From: Tubulanus polymorphus
Taxonomy: Eukaryota > Animalia > Nemertea
Assembly (NCBI RefSeq): GCF_964204645.1
Contig: NC_134036.1
Span: forward strand, 5,734,600 to 5,798,599
Length of the DNA: 64,000 nucleotides
Direction: 5' to 3'
Position numbers and translations under genes: made by a program
Part shown: in pieces, positions 1 to 45,801 of the stretch
How positions within the stretch are numbered: the stretch's first letter is position 1
Layout of the letters: every line of letters begins with the position of its first letter
The notes under the pieces: model-generated
Told to the model about the DNA's origin: nothing
The model's input: only the letters and a program-made list of their open reading frames with translations
Database searches by the model: none

Positions 1-1344
1 GGACAGACGAGGTCGGTGGATAGTTTATCGCATTTTTCGTTGACCCAGCCACGCTGTACGGCTGGGTTACCGTACACGAGCGCGTACGCTTTCACGTCCT
101 TGGTGACGACGGCGCCGGCTCCGATCATCGCGTACCGGCCGATGCGCACGCCGCACACGACCGTTGCGTTGGCGCCGATCGTCGCGCCGCGCTCTACGAC
201 TGTCGATTCGGGTTTCCAGTCTCTTTTTTCGGCACGGGGATGGCGATTATTGGTGAATGTGCACGACGGGCCGCAGAATACTCCGTCCGCTAGCGTCACG
301 TAGCGGCAGACGCTGACGTTATTCTGCAGTTTGCAACCGCGCCCGATTGTGACGCCCGCATCGATGTACACGTTCTGACCTAGTTGACAGTCGGGACCAA
401 TAACAGCGCCGGACCTTACTTGCGAATACAGCCAGATTTTTGTGCCCGATCCGATTTTACAGCCTGGTTCCAATACGGACGTCTCGTGCACGAAGTAATC
501 GTGTTTGCTTTCCATTCGTAAATCCTGGACTCGAACCCGATGACGGAAAACATCTCGTCTTTCATAACAAGTGACGTTATCGAAGTTACCTTCGTCGAAT
601 TGGGCCCGATTCAAATATTCGTCGATTAGGCGCCAAGAACCGTCCGATTCGAGAGACTCGTGCGCCAGTTCCAAGAGGCACAATACATCGATGCCGAGAT
701 CGTCCGGCGCACACGACTCCGTGCTTCCGTCGCCATAAGACACGATCGCCTTCGCGAAAGCGGAGTGCTCCGATTTCAAAGGCTCCTCTACGCAGCAGGG
801 GACGAAAAAACCACCATCGCTAGCGTCTGGAGTACCGGTCAACGAAAATCTCACAGCGTCTACGTCGGAGTCGGTCGGGTAGAATTTTAGTTTTTTGCTC
901 CAAGGCTGCCCGTCGTCAAACACAAACGCGCCTGCCTTACCGTTGACCACGATTTTGTGTCCCTTGACTGGATAATCCCAAATCATCGTCGACGTGGTTT
1001 TCAGGCCGGTGCCGTCGCCGAACTCCATACGAATATCGACCTCTTGCGAGAGGCCCCTTGTCGTTTGACCGACCGCTCTGAGTCGCAGGGGCATGCGACC
1101 GCCGGCTACGGCCAGTATGACGTCGATATCGTGCGGTTCCATACGCCAGTCAACACGATCGGTCGTGTCCGAGCGGTACCAGTAGGTTCGCACGGTCGTC
1201 ACGTCACCGATCGCGCCGCTCGAGATCGACCGCAACATCGCCTGTACGGCGTTGTGGTGTAGCATCTGATGCCCAGTCGTTACCAGCAGACGGCGTGAGT
1301 CGGCTCGACGCACCAGTCTCCTCGCTTGCGCGTACGACAGAGTC

Positions 1345-1376
<32 letters not shown>

Positions 1377-1622
1377 TCGTAACGCCTGTTCGGCCAGGTC
1401 GTAATGGCTGCGGTCAGGCGTGGCGATGACCACAGCGTCGACGGAATCATCGGCGAGCATCTCGTCCAGGCTGTAAACGGCGACGCCCGGGTGTGTTCGG
1501 CGAAATGACGCGACGGTCGCAACGTCCCCGTCGCATACGCCGGCCAGCGAGCCGCGCTCGATCAAAACCCGCACGTGGTTCTTACCACAGTAGCCGCAAC
1601 CTATCACTCCTATTCTCAACAT
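1..1622 (-). CDS. Trifunctional WbpB/WbpD/(WbpE)-like fusion, copy 1 (divergent paralogue; runs off the window edge)
   Basis: ATG at 1622 (MLRIGVIGCGYCGKNH). No stop was found in the stretches I translated. The segment is collinear with copy 2 apart from a 6-nt in-frame deletion. It contains the Rossmann GCGYCG, EKP and PHDID motifs, hexapeptide repeats, GPSCTFTN and GNPA. It is presumably absent from the ORF track because no stop codon lies inside the window. Putative 5'UTR intron 1961(GTAAGT)-1636(TTTCAG). Confidence 0.85.
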
Positions 1623-3375
1623 TTCGCTTCTTTGCCTGAAATAGTACGATGATGAAATATACAATATCCGCATGTCATGGATTTTCCTCGTAGAATTAAA
1701 ACGGGCTCATTATCTAGTGAGTGGGATACGGCGCCGACGACGTTCTTTTCGCGCGCAGTGCTGAGCGACGAACAAAGTTCGCACGAATCGAGTTGGCCGC
1801 TAACGCTGCGCGGGTAACACTCCAAATCCCGTCTTGAGATTGAGCGAACTCGCAGTTAGGCTGGGTATCGACGATGCGAAAGACATAAAGCGAAATGAAA
1901 CGGGATGTTACAAATTAGCCTGAAATGTACCCCTGTTTTTACTATTTCGACGTTTACTTACATATCCTCGAACTAGACGATCAATGCCTGTGTACGATGC
2001 GCGTATTGTGGCTGCGCTTATATTCACTATGAAAATGAATATATGCACAGCCGCATTATGCGATTCGAGTTAAAAACGAATAAATCATGAGGTTTTACTA
2101 TCGCTCTCGGCTGCGTCTAAATCATCGTTTTAGGTCAATCGAGCAATTCGGATACGAAATTACTAGCAATTCTATAGCATGATTTTATTTCCCGACGACG
2201 AAACGAAGGCCTTGTGATGACGGTAATTGATAGATATGATATGGTATGATATGATTCGTTTCCGAGTAAAATTTTACAGAATCAATGAATAAGCAAATAC
2301 GTTGAAAATGTTATAATATCAAAAGAAGGTCTGCTTTGAGCAACAGTTAGCTTATACAAGAAAACAGCCCTAGAAAAGAGTGAGAAAAATATATAATTAC
2401 GGATCATTATATAACGTATCGACATACATCCGAGGAATTTCGGTAGGTAGCCGCGCATGCGCAATGGTTTCAACCGCATCGATACGGTCAGACGAGAAGG
2501 CGTTTCATCCAATGCTATTTTCATAGCGTAAGGCGTCGCGACCGCCTGATACTGATCTTTAACCACCGATCATTTATCGAACATTATAGCGGATAAATAA
2601 AAAAATATCCACACGAGGTCAGCGGTATTTACGCGACATTTTGAATTCAGTTCATATATAGCGCCATTCTCGCGCGAGATTATCAACCACCGGGAAATGA
2701 AATCCAAGCCAGTTTACAAGCCCCTTGCGATATAAGAAACCACCCAAACCACCAATTAGACTTTGTCTGGCGGAACTCGATTATCCGGCTCCGTTCAGGC
2801 CTGAAAGTAAGTCACAAGTAAATCATAATTTTGTCACCAAGAAGATAGATTTGTATAAAAAGGCTCAAATTCTGCATGTTCTGCGGAGTAAGAACAAGCT
2901 CTCTGTCGAAAAAATACTGTTAGCTGCCGCGAAACGAAATAAATATAAAGATGCTGAAATTGTAAACGAAATTGATATATTCCAAATACTACTCGTCCAA
3001 CGACGTACTTTAACGGTTGAAACTGTAAGTACTTCTAAGGGAGTGATGTTATATCGTATTGGTGATCATGATCGACGCATCGATAGAATGGATGATCACG
3101 AGTGTACTAGATGTGGTTCTGGGTTCAGCTTGAGTGTATGGACTATACAACGCGCCGGGAAGCTAGATACACCGGTTTTTGTCTTTAGTTCCAACTAGTC
3201 GCGGATTTTACTTCAGTCCAGAAATGTTTCAATCAGAACCGTAACTAACGCCTAATCTGGGAGTCGATATAAATTCAGTAAAAATATGCCACAATATGTG
3301 AATATTGTGTATTTAAAGATATACTTCGGTGTGTAAATAAAGCTAAAAAATCGCTTCGCTTTTAATGATTTTGAT

Positions 3376-6300
3376 TTACTTTCGTAGGGATTCAACGAGG
3401 GCTCCGGCGACGCGTTCGACCTCGTCGCGGCGCAGGTAACCATGAACGGGCAGGCTGAGTATACGCGGTTGAATTGCGTCGCTGACCGTCAACTCCGGTC
3501 GCAAGTAGTCGGCGAAGGCGGGCAGTTCGTGCAGCGGTCCCGGCTCGTAGTAGACGTTCGTTTGTATCCGGTGCCGCCGATGAAGATCGTCAACGACGCG
3601 GCCGCGGTCGCAGTCGGCCGGTAAGACGACCGTGTACGCCGTCCACGAGGACGACACGCCGGCAGGTAGCGTCGGGGTCGCAACGCCGTGCGGCGATAGC
3701 AGCCCGCAATATCGCTCGGCGACGCGACGCCGCGATTCGATTTCGTCGGGGAATATTTTCAGTTTTTCTAGCAGTACGGCCGCTTGTACGGTATCTAAAC
3801 GACTGTTCATGCCGACTCGTTCGATGTGGTATTTGTGGCGCGGACTGCGGCCGTGAGCGCGCAGACTCCTGACCGCGGCCGCTAACTCGTCGCTGTTGGT
3901 GAATACGGCTCCGCCATCTCCGTAACATCCTAAATAGGAACAGAAATATCGGAATACGTTATTATCGAATGGGTTATACTGCAGTAATATAGAATCCCAC
4001 TTGTGGCAAGCGAGGATCCGCCAGGTTCGCTAGTAGTTATTCGGTCCTCCACGCTCATTTTGTTCTATATTTCAATAGGCCAAGACGAAAATAAAGAACC
4101 TTTCTCCAAGAAAATTAAGTTAACAACAAAAGAATCTTCCACTAATATCAATGAATTATATACGCCAAACCGACGAATAAGTAGAAAATAATTGTAATTA
4201 TATATTAGGCGGGTCCTTTGAAAATGCATGGATTCGGGAGAATGTTTGATGCAACTAATTTCTATAACGATTGTTGAAATTGAATGCTCGTAACGCCATC
4301 TGGCGGGATAGCTTGTGTGGCCGTCCCCCAAATCGGCTGAAATTAACACACGTCATACCTAGAGCTTTCGCCGGGTAGAAACTGGTCGTCGTTATTTCGC
4401 ACAGGTTTCCCACTTTCACGCCGTTGCGCTCGGCGCCGAAACTTTGCGCGGCGTCGGCCACGACCCACAGGTCGTTGACTCGAGCGACGGCGTCGATCGC
4501 GTCGTAGTCGGCCGGCTGGCCGTACAGGTCGACCGCCACGACGCCGGTAGGTCGCAGCCCGTTGCGTGTGGCCAACTCGATTGCTGAAACAAAAGAAAAG
4601 ATTTTAGATCTAGATGGAAATGTTGTATCAAATATGCCATATGAAATAAATGCGATGAATCAAAATAGCAGCCAATTATCTGTTAGTTTGAACAGGATTT
4701 TATTGCGAGTATCAAAACAGTTTTAAAAAGTGCTCAATTAGATAATAATTCGTTTTTTAAGGGACCTTTAAGTGCTGATAGTGTTTTTTTAGCGTTCATC
4801 TCCAAAGGTTCTTCACCGCTCTTTATTCCGAATACATGATTCATTTTCTAGCTGTTCGCTTGCATTTTATCCTCCTAAAAATAACGTCATTTACCTTTTA
4901 AGAGACTCTTCTCGTCCATGTTGAACGTGTCTCGATGAACGTCGACGAACACGGGCGTCGCGCCGGTCGTTACGACCGCTTCGACCGTGGCGCAGAACGT
5001 GTTCGCCGGCACGAACACCGCCTGGTGCGGTCGCGTGGCGCCCTTCGCCGTCAGAGCCAGGCGCAGCGCGTCGGTGCCGCTGGCGCAGGTCACCGCGTGT
5101 TTACAACCGCAGAATCGAGACAACTCGCCTTCCAGCAGAGCGACGTCCGGACCGAATACGAACTGACAGCTATCGATTACGGATATGACGCGTGATTTAA
5201 GGGATTTTTCGATCGCTTTCAGTTGCCGTTCCAAACCGGCGAACGTGATTGGAGCCGGTGAAATATCGCCATCGGCAGAAGCAGTCGGAGTTTCGAGCCG
5301 AGGGTTATGGCTGATTCGATTCGTATCTTCTTGGTTGAGCAGTGATTCGCAGTTGGTTTCCTTGTTACTTGAATCCTCGGAGAATCGAAACCCATCGCAT
5401 ATATCTATGACCCTAACAGTCTTGTTGGGTTCGGGGTGAATGGCGTTTTCCTTGTCGGTTGCTGCCGAAGACGGCTGAAAACTATCATCGAGTTGGTCCC
5501 CATCCGACGCCGCCAGATAGAGCCACGATTTGCGGTTGGTTTCCCCGTCGGTTGTCTCCGGCAAAAGTCGAAGCCTCTCGTCGACGTCACCGTCATCCTT
5601 TGCTCGTGGAAATCCCGGAGTTACTTCGACTCCGGCGACGCTTGCTGCCGGTACGAGCCGTCCGCTACCGTCCACGACGAATCGTTTACCGGTGCGAGGA
5701 CAGACGAGGTCAGCGGTTAGTTTATCGCGTTTGTCGTTGACCCAGCCGCGCTGTACGGCCGGGTTACCGTACACGAGCGCGAACGCTTTCACGTCCTTGG
5801 TGACGACGGCGCCGGCTCCGATCATCGCGTACCGGCCGATGCGCACGCCGCAGACGACCGTCGCGTTGGCACCGATCGTCGCACCGCACTCGACGACTGC
5901 CGATGCGGGTTTCCAGTTTTTCAGTTCGGCACGCGGGTGGCGGTCGTTGGTGAACGTACACGACGGGCCGCAGAATACGCCGTCCGCTAGCGTCACGTAG
6001 CGGCAGACGCTGATGTTATTCTGCAATTTGCAACCGCGCCCGATTGTGACGCCCGCATCGACGAACACGTTCAGACCTAGTTGGCAGTCGGGACCTATAA
6101 CGGCGTCGGGCATTACGTGCGAATAAAGCCAGATTTTTGTACCCGACCCGATTTTACAGCCCGGTTCCAACACGGACGTGTCGTGAACGAAGTAATCGTA
6201 TTTGCTTTTGATTCGTAAATCCGGGACTCGAACCCGGTGTCTGCCATTATTTCGTCTTTCGATTCCATTTACGCCATCGTCATTACCTTCATCCAATTGG

Positions 6301-7047
6301 TTGAAATCTAAATATTCGTCGACCAAGCGCCAGGAACCGTCCGATTCGAGAGACTCGTGCGCCAGTTCCAAGAGGCAAACGACATCGGCGCCGAGGTCGT
6401 CCGGCGCACACGACTCCGTGCTACCGTCGCCATAAGACGCGATCGCCTTCGCGAAAGCGGAGTGCTCCGATTTTAACGGCTCCTCTTCGCAGCACGGGAC
6501 GAAGAAGCCGCCGTCGCTAGCGTCTGGAGTCCCGGTCATGGAAAATCTGGCGGCACCCACGTCCGAGTCGGTCGGGTAGAATTTTAGTTTCTTGCTCCAA
6601 GGCTGACCGTCGTCAAAGACAAACGCGCCTGCCGTACCGTTGACGACGATTTTGTGTTCCTTGACCGGATAATCCCAAATCATCGTCGACGTGGTTTTCA
6701 GGCCGGTGCCGTCGCCGAACTCCATACGAATATCGACCTCTTGTGAGAGGCCCTTCGTCGCCTGGCCGATCGCTCTGAGTCGCCAGGGCATGCGACCACC
6801 GGCTACGGCCAGTATGACCGCGATGTCGTGCGGTCCTAGATCCCAGTGAACGTGACAGGTCGCGTACGAGCGGCCGCGATGCCGTCGAGTTCGTACGGTC
6901 GTCACGTCACCGATCGCGCCGCACGAGATCGACCGCAACATCGCCCGTACGGCGTTGTGGTGTTGCATCTGATGCCCGGTCGTTATCAGCAGACGGCATG
7001 CGTCGGCTAGACGCACCAATCTCCTCGCTTGCGCGTACGACTGGGTC

Positions 7048-7079
<32 letters not shown>

Positions 7080-7325
7080 TCGTAACGCCTGTTCGGCCAG
7101 GTCGTAATGGCTGGGTTCGGGCGTGGAGATGACCACAGCGTCGACGGATTCGTGGGCGAGCATCTCGTCCAGGCTGTAGACGGCGACGCCCGGGTGTGTC
7201 CGGCGAACTGACGCGACGGCCGCGGGATCCGCGTCGCATACGCCGGCCAGCGAGCCGCGCTCGATTAAAACCCGCACGTGGTTCTTACCCCAGTAGCCGC
7301 AACCTATCACTCCTATTCTCAACAT
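3376..7325 (-). CDS. Trifunctional fusion, copy 2: Gfo/Idh/MocA sugar 3-dehydrogenase + LbH N-acetyltransferase + DegT/DnrJ aminotransferase (WlbA-WlbB-WlbC / WbpB-WbpD-WbpE-like), 1069 aa
   Basis: Exons 7325-4895, 4583-4359, 3929-3376 (2431+225+554=3210 nt). Two phase-1 GT-AG introns of 311 and 429 bp. Splicing restores SLLK-A-IELATRNG and SFYPAKAL-G-CYGDGGAVF. Motifs: GCGYWG, EKP (K91), WDLGPHD (H166); LbH aa ~378-557 with GPSCTFTND, IGANATVVCG, GNPA, CPRTG; DegT aa ~693-1069 with SGTDAL, DAAQSFG, PLP Lys883, NSRLDTVQAA, LSLP. Confidence 0.93.
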
Positions 7326-7338
7326 TTCGCTTCTTTGC

Positions 7339-7635
7339 CTGAAATAATACGACGAAGAAATATCGGTTAATAACGTCCGCGTATTATATTATTTATCTCC
7401 CTCGTAGTATTAAAACGGGCTCATTATCTGGTGAGTGGGATACAGCGTCGATGATGTTCTATTCGCAAGCAGTGCTGAGTTCCAACGAATATAGTCGGCC
7501 ACTGATAATGTTCGGGCCACGTTTCGAATCCTTCATCTAAAGACGGAACCCAAAAATGGCGCCTGGAAACTGTTAAAAGGCTTATTACCATGAATTCTAT
7601 CGCTGGTTTTACTATTTCGACATTTACTTACTTAC
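7339..7635 (-). other. Putative 5'UTR intron of fusion gene copy 2
   Basis: Donor GGG|GTAAGT at 7635 and acceptor TATTTCAG|G at 7339, 13 nt upstream of the ATG. Equivalent sites are conserved in copy 1 (1961/1636) and copy 3 (13926/13676). Confidence 0.65.
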
Positions 7636-9707
7636 CCCGGAACTATAGACGAAAGGAATCTCCGTGTACGATGCGCGTATTAGTGATTATTCATTCGATC
7701 CACACATGTGGCAGGGTATACATTCGTTATGATTCTTTTAAACCCCTGCGTCGTTTATCATAATTATTAGGTCGAGCAGATCGGATACGTAATTATCAGC
7801 GTTTTTTTTTTGGTATAAACATTTTCCCGGTGACATACCGAAGTCCGTTCGATCTACGAGCAATTATCTCAATTGGTTCGACTAGGTTAATCGTTCGGAT
7901 AATAGATGAATACGATCGTTTTATTTAATGATGTCGAAATTCAAAATTTCGGGATCAAAAGTTCATACGATTTATATGTTTATATTTATCAGATACGCGT
8001 GACTGATCTGCGGCTGAAGTCTGACCTGAGAAAGTTCATTCAGTTTAGTGCCAGAAAACTAGAACAGAACCGAAGGAAAATGAAAAAATGGTCGTTGATG
8101 ATATCCGATATTGGCGTTCAGCCTTTCAATACGCGTGCATTTACAGAAACGCGCGCGCTCCGTCTTATGCACATCTGGGTACGATTAAAATTTAAAAAAT
8201 ACGTTCGGCGTCGCTGTTAAAAAGTGATTTAACCGAAAATCCCCGATCGGACCGGTGATAAAAACTGGAGTGATTAAGCGAATTGAATAGATTGTTGTGA
8301 GACAATCGATATTCGTATATATATATATATATCTTCGATGAAATATAATCGACGCATTGTGGGTGCTCGAAGAGCGGTGGTTGGTATGAGTCTATCGCTG
8401 AGTATGAGACTATCGCTCTCGGCTGCGTCTAAATCATCGTTTTAGGTCAATCGAGCAATTCGGATACGAAATTACTAGCAATTCTATGTTATGATTTTAT
8501 TTCCCGACGACGAAACGAAGGCCTTATGATGACGGTAATTGTTAGATAGATATGTTATGGTATGATATGATTCGTTACCGAGTAAAATTTTACAGAATTA
8601 ATGAATAAGCAAATACGTTGAAAATGTTATAATATCAAATGAAGGTCTGCTTTGAGCAACAGTTAGCTTATACAAGAAAACAGCCCTATAAAAAAAGAGT
8701 GAGAAAAATATATAATTACGGATCATTATATAACGTATCGACATACATCCGAGGAATTTCGGTAGGTAGCCGCGCATGCGCAATGGTTTCAACCGCATCG
8801 ATACGGTCAGACGAGAAGGCGTTTCATCCAATGCTATTTTCATAGCGTAAGGCGTCGCGACCGCCTGATACTGATCTTTAACCACCGATCGTTTATCGAA
8901 CATTATAGCGGATAAATAAAAAAATATCCACACGAGGTCAGCGGTATTTACGCGACATTTTGAATTCAGTTCATATATAGCGCCATTCTCGCGCGAGATT
9001 ATCAACCACCGGGAAATGAAATCCAAGCCAGTTTACAAGCCCCTTGCGATATAAGAAACCACCCAAACCACCAATTAGACTTTGTCTGGCGGAACTCGAT
9101 TATCCGGCTCCGTTCAGGCCTGAAAGTAAGTCACAAGTAAATCATAATTTTGTCACCAAGAAGATAGATTTGTATAAAAAGGCTCAAATTCTGCATGTTC
9201 TGCGGAGTAAGAACAAGCTCTCTGTCGAAAAAATACTGTTAGCTGCCGCGAAACGAAATAAATATAAAGATGCTGAAATTGTAAACGAAATTGATATAAT
9301 TCCAAATACTACTCGTCCAACGACGAACTTTAACGGTTGATACTGTAAGTGCTTCTAAGGGAGTGATGTTATATCGTATTGGTGATCATGATCGACGCAT
9401 CGATAGAATGGATGATCACGAGTGTACTAGATGTGGTTCTGGGTTCAGCTTGAGTGTATGGACTAAACAACGCGCCGGGAAGCTAGACACACCGGTTATT
9501 GTCTCGTTTTTGTCTTTTAGTTCCAACTAGTCGCGGATTTTAATTCAGTCCAGAAATGTTTCAATCAGAACCGTAACTAACGCCTAATCTGGGAGTCGAT
9601 ATAAATTCAGTAAAGATATGCCACAATATGTGAATATTGTGTATTTAAAGATATACTTCGGTGTGTAAATAAAGCTAAAAAATCGCTTCGCTTTTAATGT
9701 TTTTGAT

Positions 9708-12700
9708 TTACTTTCGTAGGGATTCGACAAGGGCTCCGGCGACCCGTTTGACCTCGTCGCGGCGCAGGTAACCATGAACGGGCAGGCTGAGTATACGCGG
9801 TTGAATCGCGTCGCTGACCGTCAACTCCGGTCGCAAGTAGTCGGCGAAGGCGGGCAGTTCGTGCAGCGGTCCCGGCTTGTAGTAGACGTTCGTTTGTATC
9901 CGGTGCCGCCGATGAAGATCGTCGACGACGCGGCCGCGGTCGCAGTCGGCCGGTAAGACGACCGTGTACGCCGTCCACGAGGACGACACGCCGGCAGGTA
10001 GCGTCGGGGTCGCAACGCCGTGCGGCGATAGCAGCTCGCAATATCGCTCGGCGACGCGACGCCGCGATTCGATTTCGCCGGGGAATATTTTCAGTTTTTC
10101 TAGCAGTACGGCCGCTTGTACGGTATCTAAACGACTGTTCATGCCGACTCGTTCGATGTGGTATTTGTGGCGAGGACTGCGGCCGTGAGCGCGGAGACTC
10201 CTGACCGCGGCCGCTAACTCGTCGCTGTTGGTGAATACGGCTCCGCCATCTCCGTAACATCCTAAATAGGAACAGAAATATCGGAATACGTTATTATCGA
10301 ATGGGTTATACTGCAGTAATATAGAATCCCACTTGTGGCAAGCGAGGATCCGCCAGGTTCGCTAGTAGTTATTCGGTCCTCCACGCTCAGCTCATTTTGT
10401 TCTATATTTCAATAGGCCAAGACGAAAATAAAGAACCTTTCTCCAAGAAAATTAAGTTAACAACAAAACAATCTTCCACTAATATCAATGAATTATATAC
10501 GCCAAACCGACGAATAAGTAGAAAATAATTGTAATTATATATTAGGCGGGTCCTTTGAAAATGCCTGGATTCGGGAGAATGTTTGATGCAACTAATTTCT
10601 ATAACGATTGTTGAAATTGAATGCTCGTAACGCCATCTGGCGGGATAGCTTGTGTGGCCGTCCCCCAAACCGGCTGAAATTAACACACGTCATACCTAGA
10701 GCTTTCGCCGGGTAGAAACTGGTCGTCGTTATTTCGCACAGGTTTCCCACTTTCACGCCGTTGCGCTCGGCGCCGAAACTTTGCGCGGCGTCGGCCACGA
10801 CCCACAGGTCGTTGACTCGAGCGAAGGCGTCGATCGCGTCGTAGTCGGCCGGCTGGCCGTACAGGTCGACCGCCACGACGCCGGTAGGTCGCAGCCCGTT
10901 GCGTGTGGCCAACTCGATTGCTGAAATAAAAGAAAAGATTTTAGATCTAGATGGAAATGTTGTATCAAATATGCCATATGAAATAAATGCGATGAATCAA
11001 AATAGCAGCCAATTATCTGTTAGTTTGAACAGGATTTTATTGCGAGTATCAAAACAGTTTTAAAAAGTGCTCAATTAGATAATAATTCGTTTTTTAAGGG
11101 ACCTTTAAGTGCTGATAGTGTTTTTTTAGCGTTCATCTCCAAAGGTTCTTCACCGCTCTTTATTCCGAATACATGATTCATTTTCTAGCTGTTCGCTTGC
11201 ATTTTATCCTCCTAAAAATAACGTCATTTACCTTTTAGGAGACTCGTCTCGTCCATGTTGAACGTGTCTCGATGCACGTCGACGAACACGGGCGTCGCGC
11301 CGGTCGTTACGACCGCTTCGACAGTGGCGCAGAACGTGTTCGCCGGCACGAACACCGCCTGGTGAGGTCGCGTGGCGCCCTTCGCCGTCAGAGCCAGGCG
11401 CAGCGCGTCGGTGCCGCTGGCGCAGGTCACCGCGTGTTTACAACCGCAGAATCGAGACAACTCGCCTTCCAGCAGAGCGACGTCCGGACCGAATATGAAC
11501 TGACAGTTATCGATTACTGACATGACGCGGGACTTAAGGGATTTTTCGATTGCTTTCAGTTGCCGGTCCAAACCGGCGAACGTGATTGGAGCCGGTGAAA
11601 TATCGCCATCGGCAGAAGCAGTCGGAGTTTCGAGCCGAGGGTTATGGCTGATTCGATTCGTATCTTCTTGGTTGAGCAGTGATTCGCAGTTGGTTTCCTT
11701 GTTACTTGAATCCTCGGAGAATCGAAACCCATCGCATATATCTATGACACTCACAGTCTTGTTGGGATCGGGGTTAATGGCGTTTTCCTTGTCGGTTGCA
11801 GCCGAAGACGGCTGAAAACTATCATCGAGTTGGTCCCCATCCGACGCCGCCAGATAGAGCCACGATTTGCGGTTGGTTTCCCCGTCGGTTGTCTCCGGCA
11901 AAAGTCGAAGCCTCTCGTCGACGTCACCGTCATCCTTTGCTCGTGGAAATCCCGGAGTTACTTCGACTCCGGCGACGCTTGCTGCCGGTACGAGCCGTCC
12001 GCTACCGTCCACGACGAATCGTTTACCGGTGCGAGGACAGACGAGGTCGGCGGTTAGTTTATCGCGTTTGTCGTTGACCCAGCCGCGCTGTACGGCCGGG
12101 TTACCGTACACGAGCGCGAACGCTTTCACGTCCTTGGTGACGACGGCGCCGGCTCCGATCATCGCGTACCGGCCGATGCGCACGCCGCAGACGACCGTCG
12201 CGTTGGCACCGATCGTCGCACCGAGCTCGACGACTGTCGATTCGGGTTTCCAGTTTTTCAGTTCGGCACGCGGGCGGCGGTCGTTGGTGAACGTACACGA
12301 CGGGCCGCAGAATACGCCGTCCGCTAGCGTCACGTAGCGGCAGATGCTGACGTTATTCTGCAATTTGCAACCGCGTCCGATTGTGACGCCCGCATCGACG
12401 AACACGTTCTGACCTAGTTGGCAGTCCGGACCTATAACGGCGTCGGGCATTACGTGCGAATAAAGCCAGATTTTTGTACCCGACCCGATTTTACAGCCCG
12501 GTTCCAACACGGACGTCTCGTGAACGAAGTAATCGTTTTCGCTTTTGATTCGTAAATCCGGGACTCGAACCCGGTGTCTGCCACTATCTCGTCTTTCGAT
12601 TCCATTTACGCCATCGTCATTACCTTCATCCAATTGGTTGAAATCTAAATATTCGTCGACCAAGCGCCAGGAACCGTCTGATTCGAGAGACTCGTGCACC

Positions 12701-13384
12701 AGTTCCAAGAGGCAAACGACATCGGCGCCGAGGTCGTCCGGCGCACACGACTCCACGCTACCGTCGCCATAAGACGCGATCGACTTCGCGAAAGCGGAGT
12801 GCTCCGATTTTAACGGTTCCTCTTCGCAGCACGGGATGAAGAAGCCGCCGTCGCTAGCGTCTGGAGTCCCGGTCAAGGAAAATCTGGCGGCGCCCACGTC
12901 CGAGTCGGTCGGGTAGAATTTTAGTTTCTTGCTCCAAGGCTGCCCGTCGTCAAAGACAAACGTGCCTGTCGTGCCGTTGACGACGATTTTGTGTTCCTTG
13001 ACTGGATAATCCCAAATCATCGTCGACGTTGTTTTCAGGCCGGCGCCGTCGCCGAACTCCATACGAATATCGACCTCTTGCGAGAGACCCTTCGTCGCTT
13101 GGCCGATCGCTCTGAGTCGCCGGGGCATACGACCACCGGCTACGGCCAGTATGACCGCGATGTCGTGTGGTCCTAGACACCAGTGAACGTGACTGGTCGC
13201 GTACGATCGGCCGCGATGCCGTCGAGTTCGTACGGTCGTCACGTCGCCGATCGCGCCGCTCGAGATCGACCGCAACATCGTCCGTACGGCGTTGTGGTGT
13301 ACCATCTGATGCCCGGTCGTTAAGAGCAGACGGCATGCGTCGGCTAGACGCACCAGTCTCCTCGCTTGCGCGTACGACTGGGTC

Positions 13385-13416
<32 letters not shown>

Positions 13417-13662
13417 TCGTAACGCCTGTTCGGCCAGGTCGTAATGGCTGGGCTCGGGCGTGGAGATGACCACAGCGTCGACGGATTCGTGGTCGAGCAT
13501 CTCGTCCAAGCTGTAAACGGCGACGCCCGGGTATGTCCGGCGAAATGAAGCGACGGCCGCGGGATCCGCGTCGCATACGCCGGCCAGCGAGCCGCGCTCG
13601 ATCAAAACCCGCACGTGGTTCTTACCCCAGTAGCCGCAACCTATCACTCCTATTCTCAACAT
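9708..13662 (-). CDS. Trifunctional fusion, copy 3 (dehydrogenase-acetyltransferase-aminotransferase), 1069 aa
   Basis: Exons 13662-11232, 10920-10696, 10261-9708, with the same phases and splice sites as copy 2. The likely start is the ATG at 13662, because the ORF-track start at 13692 lies in the 5'UTR intron. EKP, PH and the PLP Lys are intact; the motif reads WCLGPHD rather than WDLGPHD. Confidence 0.93.
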
Positions 13663-14611
13663 TTCGCTTCTTTGCCTGAAATAATACGACAAAGAAATAT
13701 CGGTTTACAACGTCCGCGTATTATATTATTTATCTCCCTCGTAGAATTAAAACGGGCTCATTATCTGGTGGGTGGGATACGGCGTCGATGATGTTCTATT
13801 CGCAAGCAGTGCTGAGCGACGATCAAGAGTTCCAACGAATATAGTTGGCCACTGACTGTGTTCGGGCCACGCTTCGAACCGTGAATTCTTTCGCTGGTTT
13901 TACTATTTCGACATTTACTTACTTACCCCAGAACTATAGACGAAAGGAATCTCCGTGTACGATGCGCGTATTAGTGATTATTCATTCGATCCACACATGT
14001 GGCAGGGTATACATTCGTTATAATTTTTTTAAACCCCTACGTCGTTTATCATTATTATTAGGTCGAGCAGATCGGATACGAATTTATCAGCGTTTTTAAT
14101 GGTATAAACATTTTCCCGGCGACATACCGAAGTCCGTTCGATCTACGAGCAATTATCTCAATTGGTTCGACTAGGTTAATCGTTCGGATAATAGATGAAT
14201 ATGATCGTTTTATTTAAAGATGTCGAAATTCAAAATTTCGGGATCAAAAGTTCAAAAGTTCATACGATTTAATTGTTTATATTTAACAGATACGCGTGAC
14301 TGATCTGCGGCTGAAGTCTGACCTCAGAAAGTTCATTCAGTTTAGTGCCAGAAAACTAGAACAGAACCGAACGAAAATGAAAAAATGGTCGTTGATGATA
14401 TCCGATAGTCGCGTTCAGCCTTTCAATACGCGTGCATTTACAGAAACGCGCGCGCTCCGTCTTATGCACATCTGGGTACGATTAAAATTTAAAAAATACG
14501 TTCGGCGTCGCTGTTAAAAGGTGATTTAACCGAAAATCCCCGATCGGACCGGTGATAAAAAGTGGAGTGATTAAGCGAATTGAATAGATTGTTGTGAGAC
14601 AATCGATATTC

Positions 14612-14781
<170 letters not shown>

Positions 14782-44326: not shown

Positions 44327-45264
44327 ATCGATATCTTGATCGCCGAATCGAATTATCGCTATTATTTGATCTTCGAAATTCTGTAAACAAACAACAACAA
44401 AAAACTAAAATCTATTGACGCATTAGAAAGCAGCGCGCGTGTTAGTAAATCCTATTCGTAATCGATTCGCGCCCGTTTTGAAACAAAATAATCCGTAACC
44501 GGAATGATATGAGTAAAAACGCCTCACCTCGAATTGCGGTCTTGTCTTCTCGGGCGTCTTTCGTCGAAATACGTGTCCGCCTTTGTGTCTCGCGATGTTT
44601 ACATATCGTGTTACAATAACGCGTCAACGTCCACAAGAAGGCGTTTTGTAAATGCGTTCTGTCGTGAACAGGTGGCCGTTTTACCGGCTACGGTTTAGAA
44701 TCTTTCGGCGTCATCGCGTTAATTGCGACAATTCGTCATCGGTAAAGATGTCGATAATGTTCGATGGGAATGATATTCGCTCGGTTTTTCACACGTCAGC
44801 TCGACTTTATTGGTTTCCCGTCGGTAACCGATTCGTTTCGCTGTTTTTTTTTAAAGTTATCGTCTGGGATGTGTAATGCGTGATGTATAGTGAATTGTTT
44901 GTGTAGTTATTTTCGAATTGAAAATGTATCGGGTATATAAAGTATGGACGATCCTCCGCATTGGAAGCGCGCTGATGTGTTTTCATTGTAACTATACATG
45001 TAACGTTAGAACTAAAATCGACTTGATTTGGTGACTGCGTCGACAGGGCCCTCGTCAGTCACAAACCGCCAGGGGGCACTGTCTAATGTCACGCGATTGG
45101 CAGTATATTTCCAACTGGAAATGTTTCAGCTGAACTCCTGACCAAATGTGTCGACGATCTGTTTTTGAACGTACGTTGAAAAAAAATATCAAATGAACTC
45201 CTGGAAACGAATGAAGTGTGGTCGAGCACTTCGTCATCTCTTGTCGATCTTTCGGATCGAACGT

Positions 45265-45590
45265 GCCATCATGTTCGAATCCCTGCCTGGGAGGAACGTG
45301 GCAGAACTCGCGATGTCATCATGTTCGAATCCCTGCCTGGGAGGAACGTGGCAGGACTCGCGATGTCATCATGTTCGAATCCCTGCGAGGGAGGAACGTG
45401 GCAGAGACTCGCGATGTCATCATGTTCGAATCCCTGCGAGGGAGGAACGTGGCAGAGACTCGCGATGTCATCATGTTCGAATCCCTGCGAGGGAGGAACG
45501 TGACAGAGACTCGCTATGTAATCATGTTCGAATCCCTGCGAGGGAGGAACGAGGCAGAGTTTCGCAATAGCCATCAGGTTCGATGCTTAC
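45265..45590 (+). repeat. ~50-51-bp B-box-like tandem repeat
   Basis: About 6 units of CATCATGTTCGAATCCCTGCGAGGGAGGAACGTGGCAGAGACTCGCGATGT. Confidence 0.9.
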
Positions 45591-45801
45591 AAGGGATGAA
45601 TAGGGCAGTCTAACGACGACATCAGGTCCCAATTCCCGCGCCGGCGACCATTCTGGCCATTCTGCCGCTGTCAATTCGAACTAACAGTTGTCAAACAAAT
45701 CGTATCCATTCGATGAAACAAAAACTATAATTGCATTAACGAGAGAAATCCCTCAATAAATTCAGCCAAAAAGAGAAACTTGAGTAGAAAAGTATATATT
45801 T

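Follow-up and report, generated by a model that had tools for sequence, protein, structure and literature searches.

The closest described systems are the Bordetella WlbA-WlbB-WlbC and the Pseudomonas aeruginosa WbpB-WbpD-WbpE enzymes, in which 3-oxidation, 3-transamination and N-acetylation form steps 2-4 of the pathway to UDP-2,3-diacetamido-2,3-dideoxymannuronic acid (UDP-ManNAc3NAcA; PMC10622841). Here we analyzed a window of 64,000 nucleotides from the palaeonemertean ribbon worm Tubulanus polymorphus (C12:5734600-5798599; the coordinates below are positions in this window), in which a gene that we call gene B encodes the same three enzyme classes: a GFO/IDH/MocA dehydrogenase (G), a WlbB-like left-handed beta-helix (LbH) acetyltransferase (L) and a WbpE-like DegT aminotransferase (D). 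From the N- to the C-terminus the order is G, L, D, which is that of wlbA-wlbB-wlbC, as an earlier sequence-only reading of this stretch had pointed out. With a probability of about 0.72, we consider it to be a functional nuclear gene of T. polymorphus whose ancestor was a bacterial gene set of the wlbA/wlbB/wlbC (wbpB/wbpD/wbpE) type. It differs from the Wlb and Wbp systems in being a single polypeptide with long linkers, carrying two introns and residing in an animal. Full-length matches link the L domain to WlbB (E 6e-48) and the D domain to WbpE (E 9e-78), whereas G is only distantly similar to WlbA, over the N-terminal 144 residues (E 6e-17), and searches of the worm genome recovered neither WbpA nor WbpI, the enzymes on either side of these steps in the pathway.

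The closest relatives in sequence are bacterial loci, mostly of Alphaproteobacteria, in which a G-L di-fusion precedes a DegT gene (for example Microvirga rosea L013; Rickettsiaceae metagenome-assembled genome (MAG) L017, L096). They are 37-40% identical to gene B in G-L and up to 53% in D, and their gene order equals its domain order. They differ in having a separate aminotransferase, and their operons often contain a WbpA-like dehydrogenase. Stop and start often overlap in these loci, so that the loss of one stop codon would give a fusion. Complete G-L-D fusions of about 890-980 aa in the same order are also on record, among them those of an Actinomycetota MAG (HEX2052751.1), Desulfomonile tiedjei (WP_014812053.1) and Clonostachys (CAG9948839.1). 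These bacterial and fungal fusions differ from gene B in their short linkers, the bacterial ones are without introns, and no G-L-D fusion clade is reliably sister to Tubulanus.

Gene B is situated on the minus strand in three exons (7325-4895, 4583-4359 and 3929-3376) with two GT-AG introns, and an 812-aa open frame is present at 7325-4887 of the same strand. The coding lengths of 2431, 225 and 551 nt sum to 1069 codons, the stop being extra. Both introns are in phase 1. Intron 1 (4584-4894, 311 nt, GC 31.5%) has the donor AAAAG|GTAAAT after 4895 and the acceptor TTTCAG| before 4583, and it is spanned by DNA contigs. Intron 2 (3930-4358, 429 nt, GC 38%) has the donor CTAG|GTATGA after 4359 and the acceptor ATTTAG| before 3929, and splits codon 886, three residues past the pyridoxal phosphate (PLP) lysine K883. 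Exon 3 ends in a TAA stop (3376-3378), and an ATTAAA signal is found 10 nt downstream at 3361-3366. The translations of the three exons occur letter for letter, as residues 1-810, 812-885 and 887-1069, in XP_074661587.1 (P0143, 1069 aa, LOC141914219), which RefSeq labels "uncharacterized" in T. polymorphus; the NCBI automatic model is therefore the same as the 1069-aa spliced gene proposed from the letters alone, and this RefSeq protein was used for the whole-length searches and for the fold. An acceptor-like site TTATTTCAG was noticed in 7326-7345, 13 nt upstream of the start ATG, which hints at a non-coding 5′ exon lying before it or, possibly, at trans-splicing to this site. In the DNA runs the depth rises 50-100-fold, with many loose ends, at about 3997-4046 in intron 2 (a short repeated element at about 4002-4046) and at 7508-7668 in the upstream spacer, both being short, highly repeated elements.

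The first exon encodes G, L and the beginning of D. The G domain (residues 1-345, 6291-7325, start ATG at 7325-7323) is of the NAD-dependent sugar dehydrogenase type; it matches PF01408 GFO_IDH_MocA over residues 2-115 (E 8.5e-27) and the C-terminal domain PF22725 up to residue 235, and its EKP lysine K91 is encoded at 7053-7055. After a short low-confidence linker (residues 346-375, 6201-6290, predicted local distance difference test (pLDDT) score <50), the L domain (residues 376-565, 5631-6200) is an LbH N-acetyltransferase of the WlbB/WbpD type with Hexapep matches at residues 379-510 and also Hexapep_2. It is about 50% identical to WlbB in the PDB entries 3MQG/3MQH (E 6.3e-48), with domain residues 21-198 aligned to 6-191 of a 192-residue chain. 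An acidic low-complexity linker then follows (residues 566-688, 5262-5630, pLDDT 22-30). The D domain begins at 4895-5261 (residues 689-810 and the first base of codon 811; PF01041 over residues 705-807), continues as the core in exon 2 (4359-4583, residues 811-886 in part, with D854 and K883) and is completed by exon 3 (3376-3929, residues 886-1069 and the stop). DegT_DnrJ_EryC1 (PF01041) was matched on all three exons (E 4e-26, 8e-18 and 2e-21, the last being 1.6e-21 before rounding), and the profile positions covered are 3-104, 114-177 and 218-359. In the PDB the best D match is 4QGR (Brucella DegT, E 4e-84), and WbpE follows with E 9e-78 for 3NU7, the entries 3NU7/3NYU standing at about 1e-77 over domain residues 14-385.

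The catalytic motifs announced by the sequence-only reading are present in all three domains. G has the Rossmann GxGxxG, the EKP lysine and the conserved His/Asp pair; L has the hexapeptide beta-helix along with its full-length similarity to WlbB; and D has the PLP lysine, the PLP-binding Asp and a match to WbpE along its full length. When gene B is aligned with 17 full-length G-L-D fusions, 153 columns are invariant; these are kept in gene B by construction and include G8/G10/G13, E90-K91-P92, H166-D167, D854 and K883. The AlphaFold2 prediction on this fusion alignment has three confident domains, with pLDDT of about 85-95 in the Rossmann part of G and low-confidence linkers at 346-375 and 566-688. 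The linker between L and D, of about 125 aa, has no counterpart in the bacterial fusions, where linkers are of about 10-25 aa, and in BLAST coordinates the query residues 558-690 were unmatched by G-L-D fusions.

Gene B is physically part of the host chromosome and has spliceosomal introns. The assembly has 268 Mb in 77 contigs; the gene is on an 11.5 Mb scaffold, and its paralogue on chromosome 3 is on a scaffold of 27.8 Mb. The exons have 58-64% GC, the introns 31-38% and the rest of the window 42%. GC at third codon positions (GC3) is 0.675 in these exons against 0.415 in the exons of the host UGDH, one host gene only. This bacterial-like exon composition is what would be expected if the stretch came from a bacterium, fungus or symbiont by contamination or misassembly, yet the GT-AG introns are of host-like composition, and contigs from four public DNA runs (two samples, one study) cross the exon-intron borders, for example at 4411-5158 and 4010-4438. 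Since three tandem copies are set in sequence of 42% GC on the large scaffold and a paralogue sharing the introns is on another chromosome, contamination deserves no serious consideration; we give it next to no probability and rejected it.

The family consists of four genes, namely the tandem array on chromosome 12 with copy A (G-L only) and copies B and C (G-L-D), and the chromosome 3 paralogue (G-D). Gene B is the middle unit of the array, whose period is about 6.3 kb. Copy C (9708-13662, minus strand; exon 1 11232-13662, exon 2 10696-10920, exon 3 9708-10261) has the same splice sites and 95-98% protein identity to B, and at the nucleotide level it is 96-99.7% identical over exons, introns and the downstream spacer, so it is a recent segmental duplicate. 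NCBI splits this copy into P0142 (354 aa, 'UDP-N-acetylglucosamine 3-dehydrogenase-like') and P0002 (665 aa), although the reading frame of its exon 1 is unbroken, as in copy B. The upstream spacers of B (7326-8408) and C (13663-14720) are only 82% identical with 141 gap columns, and from this divergence the two copies may differ in regulation. Copy A (1-1622, minus strand, extending beyond the window start; model P0001 of 637 aa) is 84% identical over residues 1-619 and stops in the second linker. The aminotransferase exons are absent after copy A, and a homologue of exon 3 was found only three times in the genome (B, C and chromosome 3).

The chromosome 3 paralogue (LOC141901581, C3:21951718-21955922) has three RefSeq isoforms and is 66-82% identical to gene B. 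Both of its introns have the same positions and phase as those of gene B, and L is deleted except for a remnant matching residues 510-559. Both introns are older than the duplication between chromosomes 12 and 3, and the G-D form is derived from G-L-D by deletion. Its dehydrogenase is altered at invariant positions, K91T and seven more (H118Y, H123Q and D238N among them), and reads VLVETP against VLVEKP at the site of the EKP lysine, while its aminotransferase keeps all invariant positions but one. The pattern suggests a protein with a pseudo-dehydrogenase scaffold and a nearly untouched aminotransferase.

In protein searches covering some 15 billion proteins, no sequence from outside Tubulanus was more than about 53% identical. 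In a word-indexed search of 5.8 billion clusters the top identity outside Tubulanus was 41% for exon 1, and about 57% for the aminotransferase (50-53% over the full length). An exhaustive HMMER search of 1.84 billion representatives gave nothing closer, its best match being the G-L-D fusion P0263 with 44% identity. No homologue was found in animals other than Tubulanus by any of these searches, and in the literature on nemertean horizontal gene transfer, eukaryotic diacetamido sugars and metazoan DegT no report of this gene was found, which agrees with the earlier expectation that no animal example had been described. The nearest aminotransferases are stand-alone bacterial genes, 50-53% identical, each preceded by G or G-L genes.

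Trees were built as quick searches with Shimodaira-Hasegawa-like approximate likelihood ratio (SH-aLRT) support. In the D tree (116 rows) Tubulanus is inside a 67-row clade with support 96, composed mostly of Alphaproteobacteria and fused forms, and stands beside unfused stand-alone genes of Rhodospirillales with weak support of 85. In the concatenated tree it adjoins a fungal-type G-L-D clade (support 92), and when the four rows of that clade are removed it joins P0004, the Rickettsiaceae MAG and an uncultured alphaproteobacterium (support 97). As the placement shifts with the removal of four rows, the donor is not named beyond bacterial, probably alphaproteobacterial. The related proteins come from bacteria, for the most part Alphaproteobacteria, and vertical inheritance was considered and rejected. 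The family, bacterial in origin and residing in animal chromosomes with spliceosomal introns, is a clear instance of a gene transferred to an animal, as the sequence-only reading had supposed.

The same reading had held that an operon segment collapsed into one gene inside the animal, and this part stands at most for the junction of L and D. A G-L fusion of about 525 aa is the usual bacterial form, constituting about 90 among the best 120 matches of the exon 1 search. In 12 of 80 named genomes it is the immediate neighbour of the aminotransferase gene, and in nine of these it is the upstream one of the two; the stop and start of the two genes overlap in L096 and are separated by a gap of 30 nt on the contig encoding P0146. 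The complete G-L-D form is found in compact polysaccharide operons of bacteria (Actinomycetota MAG, ERZ1758171), in Desulfomonile tiedjei and in six Clonostachys species, and the exhaustive HMMER search also returned L-D and G-D fusions. Because the G-L-D fusions fall in at least three to five separate clades, the fusion arose repeatedly, and since bacterial G-L fusions are common and full G-L-D fusions exist, no collapse of three genes in the animal is needed.

A transfer of three separate operon genes, followed by their merger inside the animal, is doubtful in our estimate. The long, disordered L-D linker without bacterial counterpart would fit an animal-made junction, the nearest aminotransferases are stand-alone genes, and the D tree sets Tubulanus beside unfused Rhodospirillales genes. 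Against this, the G-L junction need not be animal-made when such fusions are standard in bacteria, the complete fusion is found in bacterial operons, D. tiedjei, Clonostachys and a eukaryotic-looking contig, and the nearest neighbours in the concatenated trees are themselves G-L-D fusions. Because an animal could not express an operon as an operon, a gene fused beforehand would moreover be easier to acquire. The recurrence of fused forms in eukaryotes also speaks for the transfer of an already fused gene. Very probably the gene arrived with at least the G-L fusion in place; only the L-D junction, at most, could have formed in the animal, and the trees do not decide on it.

Two further groups of fusions were observed in this connection. 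Contig ctg342054 of ERZ26165376 (L006/L007, 32.9 kb) has the 907-aa intronless G-L-D fusion P0004 twice in inverted orientation; it is gene-poor with 34% GC, its neighbours are without Pfam domains and it looks eukaryotic. A neighbouring open reading frame (ORF) of 370 aa has similarity to GT-D-like glycosyltransferases (Atlas score 0.91), and Rotifera supply most of one look-alike cluster at a lower rank. This contig may represent another eukaryotic recipient of the G-L-D module. The Clonostachys fusions (P0009, P0121-P0127) are of 976-982 aa in six species, and the related fusion P0014 (L009) adjoins NACHT-ankyrin, caspase-like and CHAT genes typical of filamentous fungi; the fungi seem to have received the fused gene in a transfer of their own.

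On the preferred reading, the gene, which very probably had at least the G-L fusion on arrival, gained two introns and the long disordered linker and was then duplicated into the array A/B/C and the chromosome 3 copy, the latter having later lost L and the catalytic lysine of the dehydrogenase. The 1069-aa protein, which is without a signal peptide, would act in the cytosol. Its N-terminal NAD-dependent GFO-family domain would oxidise C-3'' of UDP-N-acetylglucosamine (UDP-GlcNAc) or of the corresponding uronate (UDP-GlcNAcA), the C-terminal PLP aminotransferase would turn the labile 3-keto sugar into a 3-amino sugar using glutamate, and the central WlbB-like beta-helix domain would N-acetylate this amino sugar with acetyl-CoA. 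The predicted product is a UDP-2,3-diacetamido-2,3-dideoxy-hexose or its uronate. The fusion plausibly helps to hand over the labile keto sugar. The P. aeruginosa dehydrogenase recycles NADH with 2-oxoglutarate, and if the same holds in the worm this recycling would couple the dehydrogenase with the aminotransferase.

Several results weigh against a functional gene of wlb type. None of the three domains of gene B reaches an NCBIfam equivalog cut-off. For G the best PDB match is 7BVJ (E 5.6e-20, residues 2-213), presumably GnnA, a UDP-GlcNAc 3-dehydrogenase, and WlbA (3Q2K) ranks fifth with E 5.6e-17 over residues 2-144 only. The branch leading to Tubulanus is very long, with about 3.3 changes per site in G-L and 1.0 in D, and the exact tree neighbour is unstable for this reason. 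The four public runs found to contain gene B sequence are all DNA, as their contigs run through both introns, and a 2015 T. polymorphus run, guessed to be RNA, has almost none of the gene B words. With regard to partner enzymes, the search of the genome with PF03721 for a WbpA-type UDP-GlcNAc 6-dehydrogenase gave one multi-exon locus only, on C5, which reads as the animal UGDH, and a bacterial WbpA-like query had no match in the worm genome. Epimerase_2 (PF02350), for a WbpI-type 2-epimerase, also had no match there while the control genomes were positive, and no glycosyltransferase or transporter using the product was identified. Since the genome searches turned up neither a WbpA-like nor a WbpI-like gene, the worm lacks part of the classical five-step route.

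The copies might instead be decaying or neutral relics of the transfer without function. No transcript evidence comes from the runs containing the gene, copy A is without the aminotransferase, the chromosome 3 copy has lost L and carries K91T with further changes at invariant dehydrogenase positions, and GC3 is not shifted toward the host value. However, the reading frames are open in all four copies over 637-1069 codons, the splice sites are conserved between copies, and gene B and copy C keep the invariant catalytic columns, copy C every such column within its covered part. The dN/dS values are 0.39 and 0.25 for B-C (for exons 2 and 3 the whole codons of both were pooled), 0.38 for B-A and 0.23-0.36 for B-chromosome 3, at dS of 0.06, 0.24 and 0.34-0.62 respectively, so that the ratio stays at about 0.25-0.39 even at a dS of 0.6. 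The family has been under purifying selection after the transfer, and the pseudogene reading, which we regard as very improbable, was rejected. The RefSeq models and the three chromosome 3 isoforms hint at transcript support.

The sequence-only reading had named UDP-GlcNAc(3NAc)A as the product, and this is not established, with no WbpA- or WbpI-like gene found in the genome and a G domain nearer to 7BVJ than to WlbA. The substrate may instead be UDP-GlcNAc and the product UDP-GlcNAc3NAc, a non-uronic diacetamido sugar, which we consider possible but less likely than not. It agrees with the multi-exon animal UGDH being the sole UDP-sugar 6-dehydrogenase locus found, with the lack of an Epimerase_2 match, with a G domain that is not specifically WlbA-like and has the presumed GnnA 7BVJ as its best solved structure, and with the top NCBIfam match of this domain, the UDP-GlcNAc 3-dehydrogenase model NF040723, which at 100 bits is far below the cut-off of 450. 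On the other hand, the uronate is the substrate of WlbB, to which L has about 50% identity. Of 84 related loci in bacteria, 20 have a WbpA-like gene within 4 kb, and in Microvirga, the Rickettsiaceae MAG and others this gene directly adjoins or sits between the G-L and D genes. The bacterial G-L-D operons also carry Asn-synthase-like amidotransferases, which are typical of uronamide formation.

A more far-reaching and tentative proposal, which we consider rather unlikely as a whole, is that the worm makes a bacterial-type 2,3-diacetamido sugar nucleotide and puts the sugar in its own mucus, tube or surface glycans. The paralogues would then divide the work between G-L-D enzymes, a G-L enzyme and the chromosome 3 aminotransferase beside a dead dehydrogenase. 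If so, this would be the first animal known to make this class of sugar.

Sequence databases already contained the enzyme classes and the fused architecture, and gene B itself existed as an unnamed RefSeq model; what is new is the animal host and the history of the gene in it, namely the gain of introns and of a long linker, the amplification in tandem and the derived state of some paralogues. That bacterial genes are transferred into animals is accepted, but the genes concerned are mostly single ones for hydrolases or toxins. In this case a complete three-step module of nucleotide-sugar synthesis entered an animal, gained introns, was amplified and stayed under selection. If the enzymes are active, the worm has a sugar building block otherwise known from bacterial O-antigens and archaeal glycans, and the chemistry of its mucus or tube, its interactions with microbes or immune mimicry could be affected. 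The same fusion is found in Clonostachys and on the eukaryotic-looking contig, and multi-step pathways may cross into eukaryotes as bacterial genes that are already fused.

The sequence flanking the array was also surveyed. A one-exon Kunitz pattern search of it had no match, and Pfam searches with its ten longest ORFs returned nothing beyond a weak Mos1 helix-turn-helix match. This match (PF17906, E 7e-5, just below the cut-off) is in the ORF at 45218-45613, which is probably a mariner remnant.

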